Numbered from the stretch's first letter, positions 11,348 through 62,500 are shown. The stretch: DNA of 64,000 bases from Antechinus flavipes (GCF_016432865.1 NC_067403.1:195610001-195674000), one strand, 5' to 3'. Translations and numbers: made by a program. Notes: generated from the letters alone by a model not told the origin.

Positions 11348-11515
11348 NNNNNNNNNNNNNNNNNNNNNNNNNNNNNNNNNNNNNNNNNNNNNNNNNNNNN
11401 NNNNNNNNNNNNNNNNNNNNNNNNNNNNNNNNNNNNNNNNNNNNNNNNNNNNNNNNNNNNNNNNNNNNNNNNNNNNNNNNNNNNNNNNNNNNNNNNNNNN
11501 NNNNNNNNNNNNNNN
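11348..11515. other. Assembly gap (168 N)
   Basis: Run of N. Confidence 1.
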
Positions 11516-12459: not shown

Positions 12460-12719
12460 ATTCTGAATGCATCGGTGGAGTGCTGCGCTCCGGGGGCAGG
12501 ATGCGGAGGGAGTTTTTTGCACACTGCGGGATCTCCGGCTGCTTCTGCGGCGGGAGAGGAGAGGAAAGGGAGATGTAGCGCGTGGGGCTCCGCAAGTATC
12601 TGCGCCAAAAATACAGCCCCGGAACACGAGAGGATGGGAAGGAAGGAGGACAGGTCCTCCCGTGCTCGCGTCCTGGGACCCCACACCGCGGAGGTGGCGC
12701 GAACAAATTGGCTACTTAC

Positions 12720-13080
12720 ACGCCAGGAGCACATACATCAGCTGCGTGAAGGGCTGCTGCTTCAGGCCCCGGAACGCCGTGTTGGGGATTCTCTCCATGA
12801 TGCCGTCATAGAAGATGCGGCGCACCGTGTCTTGCTCTGCAGGGTGGAACTCGCGGATGCAGACGTGCTCCTTTTTGCCATCTTCACCCGCCACCTCGCC
12901 GGCCGCCGCGCTGGGGGGCGGCATCGGCGGCGCCGGGGAGGGCGCTGAGCCGCCGGAGAGCGAGGGCCACATCTGGGAGGAGGACACGATCACTGTGTCT
13001 TTCTTGGCGCCGGGGATGGTGTCATGATCTTCTGCCACGATTTTCGTCTCGCAAACCATTTTGGGAGACAGACAATGCAT
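12720..13080 (-). CDS. NAT8L: NAT8L coding exon 1 (aa 1-120 plus 1 nt)
   Basis: Translates MHCLSPKMVCETKIVAEDHD...CIREFHPAEQDTVRRIFYDGIMERIPNTAFRGLKQQPFTQLMYVLLA, recognisable as NAT8L. It ends at a canonical donor T|GTAAGT (GT at 12719-12718), phase 1. Confidence 0.96.
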
Positions 13081-13596
13081 GCAAACTGGCCGGCAAAGAG
13101 ACTAGGTGTGCAAAAAATAATAAATAAATATTAACTTAAATACTAGAATATCTTTTAAAAGGAATGCCGTGAGTGGGCTCTTCTTTCCCCCCCTCCCCCC
13201 AAGCCTGTGGTTGGTCGTTTATGAGCCCGAAACGGATGGAACCAGCTGGAAAGATAGAAAGGAACAGCGGTGCATTTTGGAGAAGTATTTATAATGCGGC
13301 AGAGCCGGTGCAATCTCGGATCCCGGGGTCCCGCAGGGTCCTAGCGTCCATTGCATTGGCTGAGAAGGGTCACCATGTGATCTCGAGGGGTGGGGAAGAG
13401 AAACACCTCCCCCGCTTTGGCGTTTGATTGCAAATTACTACAGCAGTGCCTTTCTCCGGTTTTGCGTGTGTCATTCTCCCTCCCCCTCCATCCCCTCCTC
13501 TCTCCTCCTCCCTTCCTTTCCCTTCCCTTCTTGGTTCGGGGCCTGCAGAGAGGCGCTATAACACTCACTAAGCTGTCGAGGGTGGTCCCGGCTTAC

Positions 13597-13708
13597 TCCC
13601 GGCCGAGGCAGGGGGCGAGAAAGACCGAGTTTGATGGCGAGCTAGGGTTTCGCTGTGTGCGTCTTGGTAAACTGGCGGCGGCGACAGCGACAGCCCTGAG
13701 CGAGCGCT
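13597..13708 (-). other. NAT8L: Putative non-coding leader exon of NAT8L
   Basis: TATTTAA (13739-13733) lies 31 nt upstream of a CCA+1 initiator-like site at 13708. The segment is ATG-free, with donors GA|GTAAGC (13596) and TA|GTGAGT (13568). An acceptor ttattttttgcacacctAG at 13103-13102 lies 21 nt before the ATG. Confidence 0.45.
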
Positions 13709-13732
13709 GGACGCGTTGCGCTTGGGCGCAAG

Positions 13733-13786
13733 TTAAATAAGGCGGCGTTGCCTCAGCCTGCCAAAATCGCCGTCTCCCCCCGCCCC
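13733..13786 (-). promoter_or_regulatory. TATA-like box plus GC box (NAT8L proximal promoter candidate)
   Basis: On the minus strand, GGGGCGGGG at 13786-13778 and TTATTTAA at 13740-13733, inside CpG-rich DNA. Confidence 0.45.
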
Positions 13787-16700
13787 AACCCCCAGTTTTG
13801 GGTGGCTGCGTTCCCCTCACAGAAGAGTTGATTAATTTGAAGGTCGTATCCCATTCCCTAGCCCGGGAAGCCCCCTTTAAGGAAGTGACGGGGGGGAGGG
13901 GGACAGATTATCCGTTGCACTTTAGGCGTTCGCATCCTATTTTTGGATGTTTTAAGGAAGGCCTTTGGAGAACTTGTAATTTACCGGGAGGGGGAGGGGA
14001 CAGGTGGAGAGAGTTGCAGCGGCTGATTCCGAATTGGAGAATCTTTCCTGGGCTCTCCCTCTAGTCTTTGTCAAGCCGAGCACCTCCCCGATACTCGGGC
14101 CGCTCTCCTCCGGAGGAGGAAGGGGAGGGGGGAACCTCCTGGGGTCTTAGTCCTCGGGCAGCACTTGGGCGGTTTAGGAAGGCCGAACTTAAGCTCAACC
14201 CAACCACAAACATGCATCTCGATTACAACGGGTGAACAATAGCGAATGGAATCCCCGAGATCAGACGTTCTCACGACAAACGCGTTGGGGACAAAAACGA
14301 GGTTGAATTTGGGAAGCCTAAAGGTTCCGAAAGAGATGGAATCCCAGTCCGGGAAGGGAAGATTCTGCTCTGGCTTGTAAACCCGAGCTCGATCCTTCCC
14401 GAGGCAGTTCTCTCAAGGGAGAAGCTCGGAAACTCCGCTTGGGCTGGACCAAGTCGAGAAATAGCGGGCTGTGGTGCCTAAACTCGCTTCGCGCAGCAGC
14501 TAGTCCGGCCCGGCTTACTACCCCCGGGGGGTAGGTCTGGAGGCAGGGCCGGACAAATGAATACATTAGATACCCAGCTGGGGCGCCCCAAGGGTCGGAA
14601 GAGGGGCTAGAAGGGGTCCTCAGGGCGCCGCGCTCCCTTATTTACGAGTCCACTCTCCCGACTTAAGTCCTGCTGCTGCAAGTCACGCAGCCCCATTTCC
14701 CCTAGGGATAGAAGGTAGACTCGGCCAACACCCTAGCCATCCCTGCTTTTATTTTAATCACCCAAGACTGAGATGGCTGGGAGAGGAAGGAAAGAGATGA
14801 CTCTCCGGACAGCAGACAGAACGCCCCAGGCCCTAGGCAACCTGTCAATCGGATCAGAGAACGTTAGGTCCCCAGCACAACTCCCGGTCCCGACCCTAAG
14901 ATCCCGGTGCTGAATCCAAGTTCACTGCTGGGCCTGGGGCAATCCAGGTACAAGGTCCGGGCCAGTTCCCTCTCTTCCATTCCCCTCCCCTGCCCTCCCT
15001 CGCTCCATGAGCCTCCGCTTGCCTCTTATGGATCAAACTCAACCTTCTCCCGGTTCGAACCGGCCAAGCCACCGGCTCTCCCCCTCTCCTTTCTCCTCCC
15101 CTCCTCCCCTCCTCCTCCTCCTCCACCTCCTTCTTCCACCGCCCCTTACAGCAGTCGAGCCCCCGGCCCCGCCCCCGCCCACAGTCTCCCGCCCCCGCGC
15201 TCCTCCCCACCCCACCAGGAACGCATGCGCCTTGCTGCCTCGGTGCAGGTACCCGATGAGGTGTCCCATTCTCCCGGTTGGGGCATTAGGCTGGAGTTGG
15301 GGGAGGAGGAAAGAAGGAAGGCTCTTAACTGGCGAGGGATGAGGGGGCGGTTTCCTCCCCCTCTTCGCAACCCCCGTCTCTATGCTAAAGCTGCGGCTCC
15401 CTCCTGCTGTCCGGCTGTACCCGCCCCGCCCCGGTGCTGCCTGAGAGTCCGAACGGGAGGGGTAGGGGGAAGAAAGATGTGAGGGTCGGGGCCCACCGCG
15501 CCTGCGCCTGCGGCAGCCCTACTGCAAGCAAGGGAAAGAGAGATGGGGTCCATCCTGGCTAAGGGTTCCGATCTACGTGGGGACCCTCTCTGCGGGACTG
15601 GGAGACCTTAGTCAGAGTCCCAGGGACAAAGATTCAGGGAAAGATTTAGAGACCCCCTAGTCTGTCAAGAACACCCCCCTGCCCTCCTCCAGCCTGAGGG
15701 GAATCCCTGAGCTGGAAGGAGATCCTATAATAAGGAGGAGGCTGGATCGAAGAGACTTGAAATCAAAGGACTTGTCCAAGGTCATACTGGTAGCAAGTAG
15801 TCAGAAGTCAAGCCTGATTCTATGACTCTTGGAGTGAGAATGGTGGGACTTGGATTGGTTTGTTTTATTTGGAGGAAAGGAGTTGGAGGAAGGTGAATAA
15901 ATTGAGTGACACCTCCTGGAGTTTTGAGTGACCCTTTCTGGGGAGGAGGTTTTCCATGTTTTTCCACCCAGAAATCATAGAAAGCTAGATTGATGTTCTG
16001 GAATGATGTTTACATCTGCCTCTCAGCAGATCTGCCCTCCTCCCCCGACCGCCCAGAAACTGTGTCACTGTCTTGGTTCTGTGATGAGGAGCTGCAAGAA
16101 AAGTTAATCTAATCGTATTGGATGTGCCCCAGGCCTTGTTCTGGGTCCCTGTTTCCCTTTGCTCTGGGCTCTTTTTTTACCAAGATCTAAAGTCCTCTTT
16201 TCCCCAGAGATGTTGCCTTGTCTGGGATGATGGCCCCTGGACACATTTTAATTCCTTTCCTTGTCCACCCCCCTTCCCTCACCGTGATACCATGATTGAA
16301 TTTACAAGAAGTTCTTCTTTGTGAATATGGCCTTCAAAGCGGACACAGAGAAAGGAATTTGAAGACTGGAGACCTGGAGAGAAACACCCGCTCAGCTCTT
16401 TGGAGGAGCCTGCCTGGATAGCTGGGAAGAATCGAGACATTCCTAGATCAGGCTTCCTGGACTAAACACTGGTTCTTGAAACAAATGGAAACCAAAGTTA
16501 GGGCAGAATGAAATGGAAGGACAGAGCTCTGATGTGGATGAGCAAACCTGAATCTTACCTTTTATTAGTAATAGGAGTTCTCCCGTGGGGACTAAGGGAC
16601 AGCATGCAGGTAGCAGGACTCATATGTTCTTTTGACTGAGTATTTTTTCCTTGGAAGTGGGGGATCCAAGATGGTATTTTAAGTCTAGAAAACATATAGG

Positions 16701-25952: not shown

Positions 25953-26084
25953 NNNNNNNNNNNNNNNNNNNNNNNNNNNNNNNNNNNNNNNNNNNNNNNN
26001 NNNNNNNNNNNNNNNNNNNNNNNNNNNNNNNNNNNNNNNNNNNNNNNNNNNNNNNNNNNNNNNNNNNNNNNNNNNNNNNNNNNN
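25953..26084. other. Assembly gap (132 N)
   Basis: Run of N, followed by the end of a SINE. Confidence 1.
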
Positions 26085-46521: not shown

Positions 46522-46610
46522 CCTTGTGTCAAGGTTATAGGCAGTCTTCTTCAGATCCTGGAGGGCTCTCTGCATGAACTCAAAAGCATGGCAATCCACA
46601 CAAGGTCGAC
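46522..46610 (-). CDS. NICOL1: NICOL1 (C4orf48) coding exon 2 (89 nt)
   Basis: Acceptor ttttccccAG, then (S)RPCVDCHAFEFMQRALQDLKKTAYNLDTR, then donor GTGAGT. This is nearly identical to the conserved C4orf48 core. Confidence 0.95.
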
Positions 46611-52529: not shown

Positions 52530-54060
52530 CCACGATCTCCGCCATTCTGCCGAAGGGCTCCAGAAAAGGCGGAGAACCTTAGGAGGGGACGGATCTCCGA
52601 GCTCTGTTGGAGCGCAGACATCGCTCTATCGCCGTGGGCATCTACCAGGATAGGGGCAAAGCCTCCCCCTGCTTTACAAATGCAGTGAACCTCACTCCCT
52701 ACCTACTGCACCCTGGCCCCACTGGGGGTGCCCAAATGATGCCAACAGTACGTCCACGGGAGAGGTGCCCTTCCCCGCCCCCTCTTCCACCCCCGGGGCA
52801 GCTCCCACGGACTTGGTGAGCTGGTCTCGGGCTGGGCCTCTGGAACAACCCCTCCCCGCCCACAGTCCGATAGGGGGCGCCCCGAGCCTAGGCAAGGGAA
52901 GGATGCGCGGTGTAGCCTGGGCAGGGCACACCGCGGAGGGACGCCGGATACGTGGCTGGAGCGGCTCGTGCGCCGCGGGGCGGGGCGCCACGGAGCCGCA
53001 AGGCGTGGGAAGGGAGGTGACGGGTCGGGTCGTGGGGAGGGGAGTTCCCGGCGAGGCTAGGCGAACGGAGACGGGCACGCCGCGCGGGCTGAAGCCACGG
53101 AGCCTGGCCCACACGGGGTGGGGCGGGAAGCCCTTGCGGTCGGGGCCAAGGACAGGTAGGCGCCGGGCTGCGCTGGGCGCAGTGAGCGCGGGGAGGGAGA
53201 CGCCAATCCGGAGCCAGCCGGCGTAGGCTGAGTTCAAGGCCGAAGAGGAGGATGGGAGGGTGCCCCGTACGCGGGGAAGGTACCTGTGGACGGGGCTGAA
53301 CGCTCCTGTCCCGAAGAAGGAGGCTTAGGGGAGGGGCTGGCTTATGAACAGGCCGCGATGATGGATGCGCCAAGCCAGACCGATCTGGGCGCACCAGGGA
53401 GGGGGGCCGGGGCTGGGTTGGGCACATCGGCATCAGGGAGGCCGGCGCCTGGCCAGCCGGGACTGGGCGCACAATAGAGAAGGACAAAGATGGACCCACC
53501 GGCCTCGGGAGGCAGGCGCCAAGCAAGGTGCACAGAAGAGAGGCAGCTCCAGCTGGGCAGAAATGGGCCCGCTGGACTGGGGACGGAAGCGCCAAGCAGG
53601 GCGCGCAGGGGAGGCGGAGGGCGCTGGGCTAAAATGAACCCACCGGCCAGGGGAGGGGAGGGGCAGCCGACACCTACTTTCTGCCGGGATGACACTTCCT
53701 GATGCGGGCTCGGCAGTCAGAAGCCGTGGTACGAGCAGCAGCAGCAGCAGCGCGAGCAGCATCGATACCGGGGCCCCGGCGGCGGGCCGAGCGGCCATAG
53801 CGAGTGTCTTGCCCCGCAGGTTGTGCGCTTGGCAGCGCGCGGCCCAGAAACTCCAGGAAAGGATCGGAGAGAGATGGATGGGGCACGACTGCGCTGCGAC
53901 CGCCTTCCCTGCAGACGTGTCTAAGCTCCGTGCCCGACAATGCCCACGCAGCCTCGCCCTTCCAGCACCTTTGTTTGGGGACCCCCAGCTCGGGGCGGAA
54001 TCCCTCCAGCCGGCACAGAGCATGCGTCCCCGGGTCTCCCCCACCCCACCCCGTTAGGGT
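52530..54060. promoter_or_regulatory. CpG island around NICOL1 coding exon 1
   Basis: Dense CpG and GC-rich DNA spanning the start codon and about 1.1 kb of intron 1. Confidence 0.85.
53678..53798 (-). CDS. NICOL1: NICOL1 (C4orf48) coding exon 1: signal peptide
   Basis: ATG in good Kozak context (gctATGG) gives MAARPAAGAPVSMLLALLLLLLVPRLLTAEPASGSVIPAE plus A, then donor A|GTAGGT. It has a hydrophobic leader, and AEPxxGSxxPAxS matches C4orf48. Confidence 0.9.
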
Positions 54061-57339: not shown

Positions 57340-58789
57340 CCTAGTTGATAATTTTTAAGAAGTAACAACAAATGAAATAACACATGTAAAGCATTTTACC
57401 AGCCTCAAAAATATTATAGGAATATCAGAAAAATTATAGAAATATAGAAAATAATGTAGAAATATAGGATAGAAATTCTAGATCCTCTTTCTAGCATCTT
57501 GACTCTGGGCAAAGTAACATCCCTTCTCTTTAGTCAAATGAGATTACATATGAAAGGCATTTTGCAAACCTTAAAGTGACTATATAGATCGTATTAGTTA
57601 TTATCTTTGCCTCATTCCTCATCTGTAAAATGGGGATAATAATCACCCTCAAACAGCTACTATGTAGAAAAAGATTTTGGAAATCATAAATGATTATAGA
57701 AATATAATTTGTTATTAAGGTGACTTGCCTTTAGTGAAGACAATTTAGGAAGAAGTACTTGATTCAGTGCCCACTATAGGACCTTGTTGAGTAGGCACTC
57801 AATAAATGTTGAATTAAATTAATTCTCCCTCCATATTCTCACCTGGGAAGTTACTTCAGGCTTGTAGTTCTTGCAGGAACAATCACAAATTTTTTAGTGG
57901 ATACCTTTGGTTCCAATCTCTCCCCTCTCTTGATCCATCCTAGAGACTGCCTATGCCCAGGTCCTACCATGTCATTTTAGTCTTCAAAAACTTTTAATGA
58001 GCTATTTTTGCCTCTGGGATAAAACTATAGATTCCTCTGTCTGGCTTGAAGGCCTTATTCAAGATGATTCCATCCAGCTTTTCCAGTCATGTTTCATACA
58101 TCTCCTTCCCAACCAAATTTGGAAATCTTGGCCCTAAAAGTGTTTTCTCTTTCCTTTGTTCCTTATATCATATCCATATTGTATCCCCGTGTTAGACTGT
58201 AAGCTCCCTGAGGGCAGTCTTTTTTTTTTTAAGCTTTATATGTTCAATATAGAGCACAGAACATAATAGCTGTCAAATTGATGTTAAATTGAATTGGGTG
58301 TGGAGTTGTCTCTGGCCACCATTAAATGTTTGTTTTTTAAATGGGAGATATACTTTCAAACTATCAGCCATTTATATTAGTGTAAATAAATTTATAAGTA
58401 TTTCCAAATCTGACTCCTTCCTGAGAGCAGTTTCATAAATGGAAAGGGGGGTTAGATCTGGTCTTCTAGTGGGCACCTGAGGGAGGACGGAGAAGGGTAT
58501 TAAGAATCTCTTTGATGTTTCCTGGAACTAGCTCCCATCCACCCTTCATCTTCACACAGACATCTTCCCTCCCTCCTCCTGTCTCCCCCCTCATACTGCC
58601 CAAGAGAAATCACCCCTAATTAGACTAAATAATGACAGTAGGAAGGTTGGTGCCCCAAAGGTGGGAGACAATCAGAGAGAACTTAGCCGGAAAGATACTG
58701 GAGTGTGAGCGAGGACCCTACCCCAAGCCCTCCAATGTTGCCTTTTCCTTTACTGCCTTATTCCCCTCCTGTTTGCCTCCGTGAGGGTA

Positions 58790-59560
58790 GAATCCAGGGC
58801 TGCGCTAACCGTGTTTATCCCGATGACATCGATCACTGAGCTTGACGGACAGTTGTCTGAGGAGTATTAGCAGTTGTGGTGTTCTCGCCCCTCCCCTTCA
58901 CGGCCCCTCCCCCGGCCCCGTCTCCTCCCCCACCCCCACAGGTGCCCACATTAGGCTTGACTGCCCATAGGTCAGGGAGAGACTCGGGGATTGCGAGCCA
59001 AGCCCAGCCCCGCGTGTCTTCCGGGCCGTCTTGGGTGTGGGTCGGCAGAAGCGGTCCAGCCTGGGCACGTGACGTCAGCAGACGCGGGCCAGCCTGGGCA
59101 CGTGACGTCAGCAGAAGCGGGCCAGCCTGGGCACGTGACGTCAGCAGAAGCGGGCCAGCCTGGGCACGTGACATCAGCAGACGCGGGCCAGCCTGGGCAC
59201 ACGACGTGAGCACGGGGCCGCTCCGGTCGGGTCAGTGCTGCTCCCCACGTGCCGCTCCTCTGCCACACGAAGCCGCGCTTCCGTCTGGGAGGAAGAAAGC
59301 GTAAGAAGGTCAGCGGAGCACTCTCCCCCCAGCCCAGCCAGGTCTCGGGAGCACTTCTCAAGCTTGCGTTTTTCCCCGTCATCCCGCTCCTTTCCTCTCT
59401 CCCTGCCCCCCTCCCTTCCTGTTTCCTCCTCTCCTTTATCAAATGAATCCAGGCTCTCGGCCCACCGGCACGCCCGGGAGGGATTGAGGGTCAGGGAGAG
59501 AGACCGGCACGGGACTTTAAACTTCACCTCGGCCGTAAGGAAACGCATCAGAGCACAAAG
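58790..59560. promoter_or_regulatory. CpG island with promoter-like motifs (ETS, E-box, CRE)
   Basis: CpG-rich. CTTCCGG at 59018-59024 and GCGCTTCCG at 59275-59283 flank an array of CACGTGACGTCA motifs. Confidence 0.75.
59045..59209. repeat. 5 x 33-bp tandem repeat (GCAGAMGCGGGCCAGCCTGGGCACGTGACGTCA)
   Basis: Units start at 59045, 59078, 59111, 59144 and 59177, read directly. Confidence 0.97.
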
Positions 59561-62500
59561 GAAAGAGGGCTGAGGGGATCCGAGTTCGAATCCCATCTCT
59601 GCCACTTACTATTGGTGACCTTAAGCAAGGCGGTTCACCCCTGGGTTTCAGCCTTTTCCCTGTCAGATGAAGGGGTTCCACAAGATGAAGTCTAAGGGCC
59701 CTTGCAGTTTTGTCTGGGATCCTGGCAAGAGCAGGGAAGGAACTTGCCCAAGGGTCAAGCAGGTAGTTAAGTGGCTGTCCACTGCACCTCCACTTCCCAT
59801 TTCTGCTCTTGAAGAGTCTAGGATCTTTACTTCGTCTCTGTCTCTGTTTGCCTTCTCCCCCTTTCTGTCTGTCTGTCTCTGTCTCTGTCTCTCTGTCTCT
59901 CTTCCACTCTCTCTCTCCTTCTCCCTCCCATCACTGACATTCCATGTTCTAAAGCCCTTCCCAGTTCAGGCGTTCCATGTTTTCCTAGCTCTAACAGTCT
60001 GTGATTAAATCATTCTAGTTGAGAAGAACCATGCAGGATAGAATAGAATCTTGTGCCAAAATATGAAATAAGTGAGAACTTAGAGGGCTGTGTAGGCCAT
60101 AGGAAGTCAGGGAAATTTTCCTAGAGGAGTTAAGATTTGAAATAGGCCTGCAAGTACAGGTAAATGGGAAGGAATTTGGAAGGGACTCTTGGCAAGGGAG
60201 ACAGTCCTGCCCCCATCCCCAGGCCATGCCCGTGGCATAGCTGCCTGAAGACAATCAGTGTCTGACCCTGTTGTAGGATTTAAGAAAAAAAGCAAAGAGC
60301 AACAGATTGAATGCTTTGAATCAGCAAATCTTATAATCCTACAGGTTATAATTCACATTTTCAGAAAAACAGCTACCATATAGTGAAGAAAATAGTAGGT
60401 GAGGAGCAGAAGCCCTGGATTTAAGTAGCAAAAAAAAGAATTCCTATTTCTATAGGGTTTTAGTAATCATAAAGCATTTTCCCACATAAAAACCTATGAG
60501 GTAAGTTTTTACAAGATTATCATTTTCATTTTGTAGTCCAATAAAATGATGGTCAAAGGTAGGATGATTTGACCAGGTCACAGTCCATCAGAAGAACCCA
60601 GATTCAAGCACAAGGATCTGTTGGTTCCATTCTTCCCACTATAGCATACCCTTATCCCCATTGTCTTTGGTGCCCATTGACCCAGAGGAATGGATACACG
60701 CACACAAAAACAAAATCAGACCCAACAGGATTAGAACTTCAGGAAGACAGACCTTCAAGGAGTCTTGTTCTACCTGCTCCCAAAGCTATTTCTCTAAGGC
60801 TGTGAAACAGATAAAGTGAGGAGACACATTATCTCCAACACTGCTGCTGCTAGGTTATAAAATCTGGAAGATGATCTGACCAGCAAGACAGTGATTGTTC
60901 TGTGGATACACCTTCCCTTGAGCTTTGTGTGACCTAAGTTACAACAAGCTGCAGTCTTGTGTTTAGCAGAGTGCCTGACACATAGTAGATAATTTAGAAA
61001 TGCTTAGAAAAGCACCATCCGCTTTGACAGGGTTTTCAGTTGCCAGACAGCCTTATCCTTATACACTCAAGAAAGTTAACAACAGAATTCCTCCCCTTCT
61101 CTCTGCTTTTTTGAATAGTCCACTGGCTTCTTCCCCATAAGCCCCCTGAAACCTTTCTCATTACTTAGAGAAAGAAGTATGTTACTAATATTCTGGTGAT
61201 GTCATGGGACTGTGAATCAAGAAATAACAATAGCTAGCATTTGCGCAGCATTTTAAAACTTCAAGATTTGCAGGATGCTTTTCACATTTTAACTCATTTA
61301 CACTCATAACAATTCTGGGGAGATAGGTGCTTTTATGACTCCCATTTTACAGATAAGGAAAGTAAGGCAGACAAGTTCTGTGGCTAGAAAATATCTGAGG
61401 CTAAGGGCAGGTAGATGGCACAGGGACAGAGTACTAGCCTGGGAGTTAGGAGGACCCAAGTTCCCAAGCAAGTCACAACTCCAATTGCATCGAAAAGAAA
61501 ATATCTGAGGCTAGATTTGAACTTAAGTCTTTCTGATTTCAAGCCTTGTACTCTATCCACTGTACCATCCAGGTAAATGCCACAATGTCCAAAAGAAGTA
61601 AAACTTAAAGTTGTTCAGAGGTCAGTGGTAGAGCCCAATGAGTTGTTCTCAGTAAATAAATGTACACTAGAAGTGACGTGAAGGAAATCATCAGAGAGAT
61701 GTATAACTTAAACAGAAAGTGATCCAGATAACTGAGGATCTAGGTATCAAGAGGAATCTAGGAATAACCTAGCATTTGGCTACACCCCTGTGCAGCGTAA
61801 CAGAAGGTCATGGTTGAGAGTTGTAAAAGATCAGACAGGTGGCATTTAGCCACAGACACTAACTAGACAAATCCTTCTGCCTCAGTTTCCCCAACTGTGA
61901 AATGAAGATAATAGCAGGTGTCTCCCAGGATTGTTGTGAAGATCAAACGAGATATTTGTAAATGGAACATTTACCTAGCACATAATAGTCACTATATAAT
62001 TGCTAGCTATTATCATTATTATTATTAAGAAGATGTGGGTGGGTTACAATCTGCATCTTTTGGAAGAAGTGCCTACATCAGCAGGGTTACAGACCCTATG
62101 AAGGAATAAAGTATAAATGAATGAATGAAAAAATTAAAATAAAGACTAGATGAATGAGAGAGACTCTAGAACAATCTGAACAGCACTGTTGATGGGAAGA
62201 GGGGGTAAACTGAGCTTCTAGCCCATTCTTTGGGTCTTCTGACCTTCGTTATCAAATACTCAATTTCTCTGATGTCTAATCAATTGAAAAACTAGCCATG
62301 TTACCTGTCAGCTTGTAAATCACTCGTGTAGATTTCTCCTTCAAAGGAAGGATTGAGATAGGAGCCAAAACAGCTTCTCTCATTGAAGAGAGTTGTTCTG
62401 GCTATGGGGAAATCATCCCTCAAAGCACAGAACCATAGACTTATCAAAAACAGAAAAAGCCTTAGAACATCATAAAAGATCTGCACTAGACTTTAGAAAA

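Follow-up and report, generated by a model that had tools for sequence, protein, structure and literature searches.

An Array of Putative CREB-Family Sites, Expanded in Two Dasyurid Marsupials, in a CpG Island Upstream of NICOL1

Introduction

Antechinus flavipes, the yellow-footed antechinus, is a dasyurid marsupial with a published genome (PMC9290055). The stretch of its DNA that was analyzed here, called the window (64,000 nucleotides), contains the gene NICOL1 on the minus strand. Over 37.9 kb, the window is 100% identical to the A. flavipes locus on CM028222.1 (GCA_016432865.2). In the mouse, brain and testis are rich in Nicol, spermatocytes express it strongly, and male fertility depends on it (PMC10125973). 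Upstream of the NICOL1 start codon, a sequence-only reading had noticed a minisatellite that repeats an overlapping E-box and CRE five times. Two questions arise: how and when was this array formed, and could it influence the expression of NICOL1?

Results and Discussion

A 33-bp Tandem Array with CREs Lies in a CpG Island Upstream of NICOL1

Tandem Repeats Finder (TRF) revealed a tandem array at window positions 59041-59212 with a period of 33, 5.2 copies, 92% matches, no indels, and a score of 288, and a second repeat search of the window led to the identical register. The exact 12-mer CACGTGACGTCA is present at 59066, 59099, and 59132, a form with one mismatch, CACGTGACATCA, starts at 59165, and the fifth unit of the array has the sequence CACACGACGTGA. 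TRF and pattern search thus recovered in place everything that had been described for the array, i.e., five 33-bp units, three perfect composite sites, a variant fourth, and a degenerate fifth. In dinucleotide shuffles of the whole window 0.06 matches of the CACGTGACGTCA type are expected, and at least four were found in 0 of 100 shuffles. The exact CRE is confined to the array within the 64-kb window, while shuffles expect 0.2 per 64 kb. Also the E-boxes are concentrated here, as five of the nine CACGTG motifs of the window fall within 59066-59251. The positions of all features are listed in Table 1.

Table 1. Features of NICOL1 and of the upstream array in the Antechinus flavipes window.
Feature	Position	Strand	Basis or remark
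NICOL1 exon 3	about 33623-33558	minus	tblastn
NICOL1 exon 2	46522-46610	minus	PF15161 matches; upstream exon joins here in devil models
Canonical NICOL1 exon 1 (ATG, signal peptide)	53672-53798	minus	100% identical to XP_051820175.1 over 42 residues
Equivalent of the devil upstream NICOL1 exon	58810-59284	minus	tblastn, alignment to devil locus L001, splice contexts
Pseudo-unit, old single-copy sequence resembling the units	59016-59047	minus	orthologous to the sole unit-like sequence of Dromiciops
ETS core CCGGAAG (plus strand CTTCCGG)	59018-59024	minus	inside the pseudo-unit; common to devil and Dromiciops
Array of five 33-bp units	59048-59212	minus (NICOL1 strand)	TRF, repeat search, unit table
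Array unit u1, degenerate	59212-59180	minus	
Array unit u2, TGATGTCA	59179-59147	minus	
Array units u3-u5, exact TGACGTCACGTG	59146-59048	minus	
Exact palindromic CRE TGACGTCA, three copies	59070-59077, 59103-59110, 59136-59143	strand-symmetric	pattern search, shuffles
Decayed fourth CRE TGACATCA	59169-59176		just beyond the span of the exact CREs (59070-59143)
Four CACGTG E-boxes, each sharing 2 bp with a CRE	59066, 59099, 59132, 59165 (span 59066-59170)		
Stand-alone CACGTG E-box	59246-59251		34 bp off the array; common to all three dasyurids
Second ETS-like core, plus GCGCTTCCG, minus CGGAAGCGC	59275-59283		at the exon start; Antechinus only

The surroundings of the array contain several single-copy motifs. 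The pseudo-unit was also found in koala and in the devil (Sarcophilus harrisii), and its Dromiciops version reads TGACTCA. At the site of the stand-alone E-box Dromiciops has CACGTT and koala CATGTT. Both ETS cores that had been noted on the two sides of the array are present, but the second is specific to Antechinus; devil and Sminthopsis have CAGAAGCG at its position.

A 500-bp window at 59001 has a GC content of 0.67 and a CpG o/e of 0.74, and its flanks are CpG-poor. The NICOL1 ATG at 53798 on the minus strand is 5247 bp away from position 59045, which confirmed the location in a CpG island about 5.2 kb from the ATG.

NICOL1 consists of three small coding exons over about 20 kb (window 33555-53798, minus strand) in every marsupial locus compared. 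The RefSeq models of Antechinus, Sminthopsis, and Dromiciops have 166-167 amino acids and start at an upstream in-frame ATG (MLCAGW..., at about 54023). The approximately 75 residues before the signal peptide are probably an artefact of the open GC-rich 5' region.

The Array Is Part of an Upstream NICOL1 Exon in the Devil Gene Models

All frames through the array are open. A minus-strand frame of 156 amino acids (58972-59442) matched a single protein cluster among 5.8 billion proteins. The matched protein is NICOL1 of Sarcophilus harrisii (UniProt A0A7N4PIU9, 237 aa, E 4e-33), and the 90% cluster of this protein also has RefSeq XP_031797273.1, which is annotated as "isoform X1" (242 aa). Both consist of a long N-terminal extension, followed by NICOL1 exons 2 and 3, and lack the signal-peptide exon, i.e., canonical exon 1 is skipped in the long devil isoforms. 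The two devil proteins were used for tblastn, and the extension mapped to window 59371-58808 on the minus strand, followed by exon 2 and exon 3.

The exon and its donor are identical in the two annotation pipelines, UniProt/Ensembl-derived and RefSeq. The acceptor is an AG at 59286-59285 after a polypyrimidine tract, which is kept in all five species that were compared (see below). The last exon base is 58810, followed by the donor GT at 58809-58808 (CACG/GTTAGC), which has the same phase as canonical exon 1. A GT can be aligned at this position in each of the five species. As a donor, GTTAGC is weak. That both pipelines picked the same weak donor suggests that RNA-seq data underlie the models. 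The models indicate that the NICOL1 strand of the array is transcribed in the devil, and the Antechinus exon might be transcribed likewise; the upstream exon is not part of the CDS of XP_051820175.1, the RefSeq protein of A. flavipes. The devil UniProt model, which is Ensembl-derived, begins inside the island without a start codon, and the devil array begins about 150 nt downstream of its 5' end. The array had been proposed to be a promoter element. It is upstream of the NICOL1 ATG and in a CpG island, but in the devil models it is transcribed within the upstream exon and is thus more than mere upstream promoter DNA.

In Antechinus the long frame runs into a stop at 58972. Before the donor is reached, it is also shifted relative to the devil frame, by a 14-nt insertion and three deletions of 1 nt each. 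The frame is thus broken, indicating that the upstream exon is non-coding. The CDS of the devil "isoforms" is probably an artefact of the open GC-rich frame.

Two further observations were made at this exon. The first about 60 intron nucleotides past the donor (58745-58809, minus strand) are nearly identical in Antechinus and devil and recognisable in Dromiciops, and this intron start is more conserved than the upstream exon itself. The RefSeq devil isoform X1 opens in an extra exon (L001:10001-10102), 7.7 kb upstream of the array, the counterpart of which is beyond the window. It adjoins a long pyrimidine-rich low-complexity tract (L001:9657-9964), and the DNA around it is moderately GC-rich, without a CpG island (o/e 0.36).

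The Array Predates the Split of Antechinus and Sarcophilus

The NICOL1 loci of five marsupials were compared, i.e., the Antechinus window and the loci of Sarcophilus (L001), Sminthopsis crassicaudata (L004), koala (L005), and Dromiciops (L003). The distance between two conserved anchors is 185 nt in Antechinus, with five 33-bp units and the start of the pseudo-unit, and 194 nt in Sarcophilus, with three 36-bp units, two 33-bp units, and the start of the pseudo-unit. It is 36 nt in Sminthopsis, which has a single unit with neither a CRE nor an E-box, and 62 nt in koala, which has a single CpG-decayed unit without a CRE and the start of the pseudo-unit. In Dromiciops it is 23 nt, and only the pseudo-unit (TGACTCA) is present. 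The unit counts in the five species are 5 (Antechinus), 5 (Sarcophilus), 1 (Sminthopsis), 1 (koala), and 0 (Dromiciops), as expected from the proposal that the expansion is lineage-specific.

The devil array (L001:17709-17890) has a period of 36 and 5.2 copies, and it contains four exact TGACGTCA. Both arrays, with head-to-tail units of 33 bp and 36 bp, are minisatellites by the usual definition (unit of about 10-100 bp). The borders of the devil array are identical to the borders of the Antechinus array, and the last units of both carry one common position-specific variant. The presence of five units in both species, the common borders, and the common variant of the edge unit show that the array predates the split of Antechinus and Sarcophilus. 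As judged from the alignment, the expansion is specific to the lineage of these two among the five marsupials compared. By parsimony, the array is younger than the split from Sminthopsis, and one unit was there already at the koala-dasyurid split. The calibrations for these nodes are about 4-22 Ma for Sarcophilus versus the phascogaline Murexia (quoted in PMC9290055) and about 56-64 Ma for the koala-dasyurid split (PMC9290055).

The origin of the unit was also analyzed. The unit is repeated nowhere else in the window or in the five loci. At the orthologous site, koala has the flanks and one unit, and Dromiciops has the pseudo-unit. A transposable element or an LTR-derived promoter was rejected as a source, because the unit is unique to this site and the outgroups carry orthologous single-copy sequence. 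The array bears no sign of an LTR; the unit arose from single-copy DNA of this locus, which koala and Dromiciops also have. A search for an ncRNA origin yielded only sub-threshold chance matches in Rfam and no tRNA.

The CRE Is Retained in Both Arrays, the Overlapping E-Box Is Not

Over 28 gap-free positions the distances between units were 0-4 within species and 4-9 between species, and the units clustered by species. This grouping by species, and not by position in the array, indicates concerted evolution. The unit positions 14, 19, and 23 are T, A, and T in every Antechinus unit and in Sminthopsis, and C, G, and C in every devil unit, i.e., three W>S changes are fixed in five of five devil units. 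The fifth base of the E-box corresponds to position 14. All five devil units therefore have CACGCG, while TGACGTCA is retained in four exact copies, and the composite of E-box and CRE is thus not what the two species have conserved. The canonical E-box CACGTG is not conserved in the orthologous units, with CACGCG in the devil and CGCGTG in Sminthopsis, compared to four copies in Antechinus. The T at position 14 is also present in Sminthopsis (and koala), showing that CACGTG is ancestral and that the devil CACGCG is derived. An origin of the E-box by CpG decay of a devil-like form was rejected, because Sminthopsis and koala carry the T.

The 12-mer with the CRE, GCTGACGTCACG, has no fixed difference between Antechinus and devil, versus five at the remaining 16 gap-free positions (Fisher p 0.044). 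This is suggestive only of the CRE core and its flank as the portion that both species have retained. In Antechinus four of the seven unit variants fall in the CRE-bearing 12-mer, in the decayed units u1 and u2. Decay of edge units was observed in both species, i.e., u1 and u2 in Antechinus and u5 in the devil.

The unit length corresponds to 3.14 helical turns for 33 bp and to 3.43 for the 36 bp of the devil. The 36-bp unit thus removes the argument that the sites are helically phased by a spacing of three turns.

The CpG Island Is Older Than the Expansion and Evolves Fast

The exon equivalent coincides with the CpG island (476 nt, GC 0.67, CpG o/e 0.77). According to the definition of Gardiner-Garden and Frommer (a length of 200 bp or more, a GC content of 0.5 or more, and a CpG o/e of 0.6 or more), a CpG island is present in Antechinus, devil, and Sminthopsis, and is absent in koala and Dromiciops. 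This does not depend on the array, as the CpG o/e without it is 0.76 in Antechinus, 0.81 in the devil, 0.87 in Sminthopsis, 0.19 in koala, and 0.36 in Dromiciops. The island is present in all three dasyurids, including Sminthopsis with its one unit, and thus, among the five species, it is confined to the dasyurids and predates the expansion. Sminthopsis has retained the island without any CRE.

The identity of Antechinus and devil is 88.5% in the island, compared to 94.1% over the 3.5 kb of intergenic sequence next to it (p 3.5e-5), i.e., the island evolves at about twice the background rate. At the level of this pairwise comparison, the island is without visible constraint. The substitutions on the devil lineage in the island outside of the array are 15 W>S and 3 S>W, versus 37 and 52 in neighbouring DNA (p 0.0015), and this excess fits GC-biased gene conversion and would agree with a purely neutral origin of the island as well as of the array.

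A 41-bp segment just after the pseudo-unit (58975-58985 region) is present in koala and Dromiciops and missing in all three dasyurids, showing that the dasyurid island was reshaped by several indels besides the repeat expansion.

A Putative Alternative NICOL1 Promoter with a CRE Cluster, and Other Readings

The reading that we favour, and to which we give an even chance, takes the island for a NICOL1 5' exon with an alternative promoter upstream of the canonical one, the array for a cluster of three to four full CREs in the promoter-proximal, transcribed part, binding of the CREB family for the conserved activity, and the E-box for dispensable. The minisatellite goes back to the ancestor that Antechinus and Sarcophilus have in common, in which a single unit of about 33 bp that was already there was multiplied to five copies. 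It sits in a dasyurid CpG island that would represent an upstream non-coding 5' exon, likely an alternative promoter of NICOL1, on the minus strand. The likeliest activity would be that of a cluster of three to four putative CREB/ATF/CREM sites, located within a dispersed start region of the CpG island or shortly downstream of it. The CREs could make the upstream NICOL1 transcript, and possibly also the canonical promoter 5 kb away, cAMP-responsive. The upstream exon skips the signal-peptide exon, and thus its transcripts cannot encode secreted NICOL; an effect on the NICOL1 output would therefore be indirect, either by enhancer action or by interference. The E-box and the CRE share 2 bp, and thus bHLH-ZIP and bZIP dimers would more likely occupy them in competition than in cooperation. 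The overlapping E-box, although ancestral, would be dispensable. A link to CREM in the marsupial testis is speculation. The favoured reading draws on the two devil models, the splice signals aligned in all five species, the dasyurid CpG island, and the CRE 12-mer without fixed differences. Functional CREs are usually found upstream of the start site, within about 200 bp, and the location of the array in the devil models, transcribed and about 150 nt downstream of the Ensembl-derived 5' end, speaks against this reading. So do the fast evolution of the island, the unit variants in the CRE-bearing 12-mer of Antechinus, the CRE-free island of Sminthopsis, the weak donor, the skipped signal-peptide exon, and the A. 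flavipes RefSeq CDS without the upstream exon.

An extended version of the favoured reading starts from an AP-1-like single-copy site (TGACTCA in Dromiciops) in the newly formed CpG island, which would have become a full CRE and would have been multiplied five-fold in the antechinus-devil ancestor. This would have created a cAMP/CREM-responsive upstream promoter, and NICOL1 transcripts that lack the signal peptide or are non-coding would modulate the canonical promoter of NICOL1, on which sperm maturation depends, e.g., by transcriptional interference or enhancer action. We regard this version as unlikely; if it were true, a male-fertility gene would have been rewired in a lineage-specific manner in a clade that includes semelparous males.

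The data have also to be compared with readings in which the array has another function or none. The main rival, serious although less likely than the favoured reading, is that the array is a neutral GC-rich minisatellite driven by recombination or conversion, in which a unit with a near-CRE was amplified by slippage or unequal exchange and homogenised in each species, while GC-biased gene conversion keeps the CpGs, and that its motifs have no effect on expression. The clustering of the units by species, the three W>S changes fixed in all five devil units, the W>S bias of the devil island, and its rate of about twice the background are all in line with such a neutral history, and so are the decaying edge units of both species, the complete loss of the E-box in the devil, and the lack of a CRE in Sminthopsis. 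This history does not account for the annotation of the region as an exon in two devil gene models, and the CRE 12-mer is the sole block without fixed differences. In addition, a CpG o/e near 1 over a 5'-exon island is the usual mark of an unmethylated promoter, and five copies with the same borders were kept in both lineages after the split. The sequence-only reading had gone further in the functional direction and had proposed a helically phased, homotypic E-box/CRE promoter cluster, bound by USF/TFEB and CREB/CREM, that acts as a copy-number-variable rheostat for NICOL1 or for a divergent gene. The motifs and the 33-bp spacing in Antechinus as well as the lineage-specific expansion agree with this. 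Nevertheless, it is distinctly unlikely, as no devil unit has CACGTG, the devil unit is 36 bp long, the array is within a transcribed exon in the devil models, and overlapping E-boxes and CREs are reported to be antagonistic in the viral example discussed below. The copy number is identical (five) in the two array-bearing species, and thus variability of the copy number found no support. Also the assignment to the CLEAR type failed, because the minus strand, GTCACGTGCC, agrees with the CLEAR decamer GTCACGTGAC at only 8 of 10 positions, and the site is missing in the devil. For a divergent gene, no coding exon was found on the plus strand of the window or of the further 10 kb upstream in the devil. 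NELFA is the divergent partner of NICOL1 in the human arrangement; in a weak test, none of four of its N-terminal motifs was found on the plus strand of the window and of the further 10 kb of the devil.

Two more readings concern what is transcribed from the island. It could promote an unannotated antisense or divergent transcript on the plus strand, with the array upstream of the start. Bidirectional CpG-island promoters typically carry ETS, CRE, and E-box motifs, as does the island, and a donor-like GTAAGA is located at about 59300 on the plus strand. However, this GTAAGA is the complement of the polypyrimidine acceptor of the minus strand and is not a GT in Dromiciops. Neither an ORF nor a known RNA family was found downstream, and none of the compared loci is annotated on that strand, making the plus-strand transcript very improbable. 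The other reading takes the devil annotations literally, so that the repeat would encode an (ADVTCPGWPAS)n N-terminal peptide of a long, non-secreted NICOL1 isoform. The 237-aa and 242-aa devil models indeed read in frame through the array into exon 2, and the unit lengths of 33 and 36 are multiples of three. We consider a peptide function hardly credible and have rejected it, because the reading frame is broken in Antechinus by the stop and the indels described above, which tblastn reveals as frame switches and stops. In addition, the Ensembl-derived model has no start codon, no further match was present among the 5.8 billion proteins, and the amino-acid identity is 62-70%, compared to about 89% for the surrounding DNA, as in non-coding sequence.

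Comparison with Known Repeated Elements

Among natural systems, the TYMS enhancer region (TSER) comes closest. Here the 5'UTR of human thymidylate synthase contains tandem repeats of 28 bp, each of which can bear an E-box for USF1 (PMC7712088). The TSER and the NICOL1 array are both GC-rich minisatellites, with one transcription factor site per unit and with single-base unit variants that make or destroy the site. The TSER belongs to the transcribed 5' part of a gene with a CpG-island promoter, and the NICOL1 array would do so as well. Both occur with two unit lengths, 28 or 34 bp for the TSER and 33 or 36 bp for the NICOL1 array. A distinctive feature of the TSER is its copy-number polymorphism within the species, for which expression and clinical-association data exist. 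The site of the TSER is an E-box, whereas the conserved site of the NICOL1 array would be the CRE, in an upstream alternative exon.

The second example are the Tax-responsive elements of the bovine leukemia virus (BLV) LTR, which are described in PMC6202831, citing Calomme et al. 2004, as three repeated enhancers with a CRE overlapped by an E-box. The E-boxes are reported to lower the CRE-driven activity, probably by steric hindrance (PMC6202831). Competition is therefore more plausible than synergy for the NICOL1 array. Repetition and the combination of a CREB/ATF site with an overlapping E-box are common to both. As described in this source, the BLV elements differ in being dispersed in U3 and in having imperfect CREs and CAGCTG or CACCTG E-boxes, whereas the NICOL1 array is head-to-tail, with a perfect CRE, a CACGTG E-box, and no sign of an LTR.

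With regard to the CREs alone, the array resembles synthetic reporters, in which several full TGACGTCA are likewise regularly spaced at a few tens of bp. With 4 to 6 CREs in tandem in front of a minimal promoter, such reporters respond strongly to cAMP. In contrast to their CREs, which are upstream of a TATA box, the array is apparently downstream of at least one start site and in native chromatin. A possible further parallel is the human FMR1 promoter, in whose CpG island CACGTG would be directly followed by a bZIP half-site with an ACGT core. The FMR1 promoter contains an E-box for USF1/2 and NRF-1 sites (reviewed in PMC7920310). The E-box/CRE-like site of FMR1 is single, while that of the NICOL1 array is repeated. 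The array is a further example of the known type of the TSER, the BLV elements, and multiple CREs, and not a new type.

An active array would represent a natural and datable case in which tandem duplication has made a promoter-proximal cluster of transcription factor sites. The species form a series from no unit in Dromiciops via one unit in koala and Sminthopsis to five units in Antechinus and Sarcophilus. The two species with five copies differ in the overlapping E-box, which provides a comparison for the multiplicity of sites and the interplay of CRE and E-box at a fertility gene. If the array is inactive, concerted evolution and GC-biased turnover would have yielded DNA that is rich in binding sites, which calls for caution when CpG islands are interpreted from motifs.

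Further Features of the Locus

The window contains a second, larger CpG island at 12500-15500 (GC 0.56-0.66, o/e 0.63-0.91). Its location suggests that it might be part of the gene that follows NICOL1 downstream, which is NAT8L in human. Runs of N are present at 11348-11515 (168 bases) and 25953-26084 (132 bases).

The stretch at 59405-60247, directly upstream of the island in the NICOL1 sense, is colinear in koala and Dromiciops, while about 720-790 bp of it are missing in the devil and in Sminthopsis. A tract rich in (TC)n (59854-59930) is located within it, as is a B-box motif of the tRNA type near 59575-59595. In place of the missing DNA, the devil has about 120 bp, including a 31-nt poly-G (L001:17461-17491), and Sminthopsis has 11 bp, and the borders differ. 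The differing borders and the colinearity in koala and Dromiciops suggest two independent deletions and not an insertion in Antechinus.
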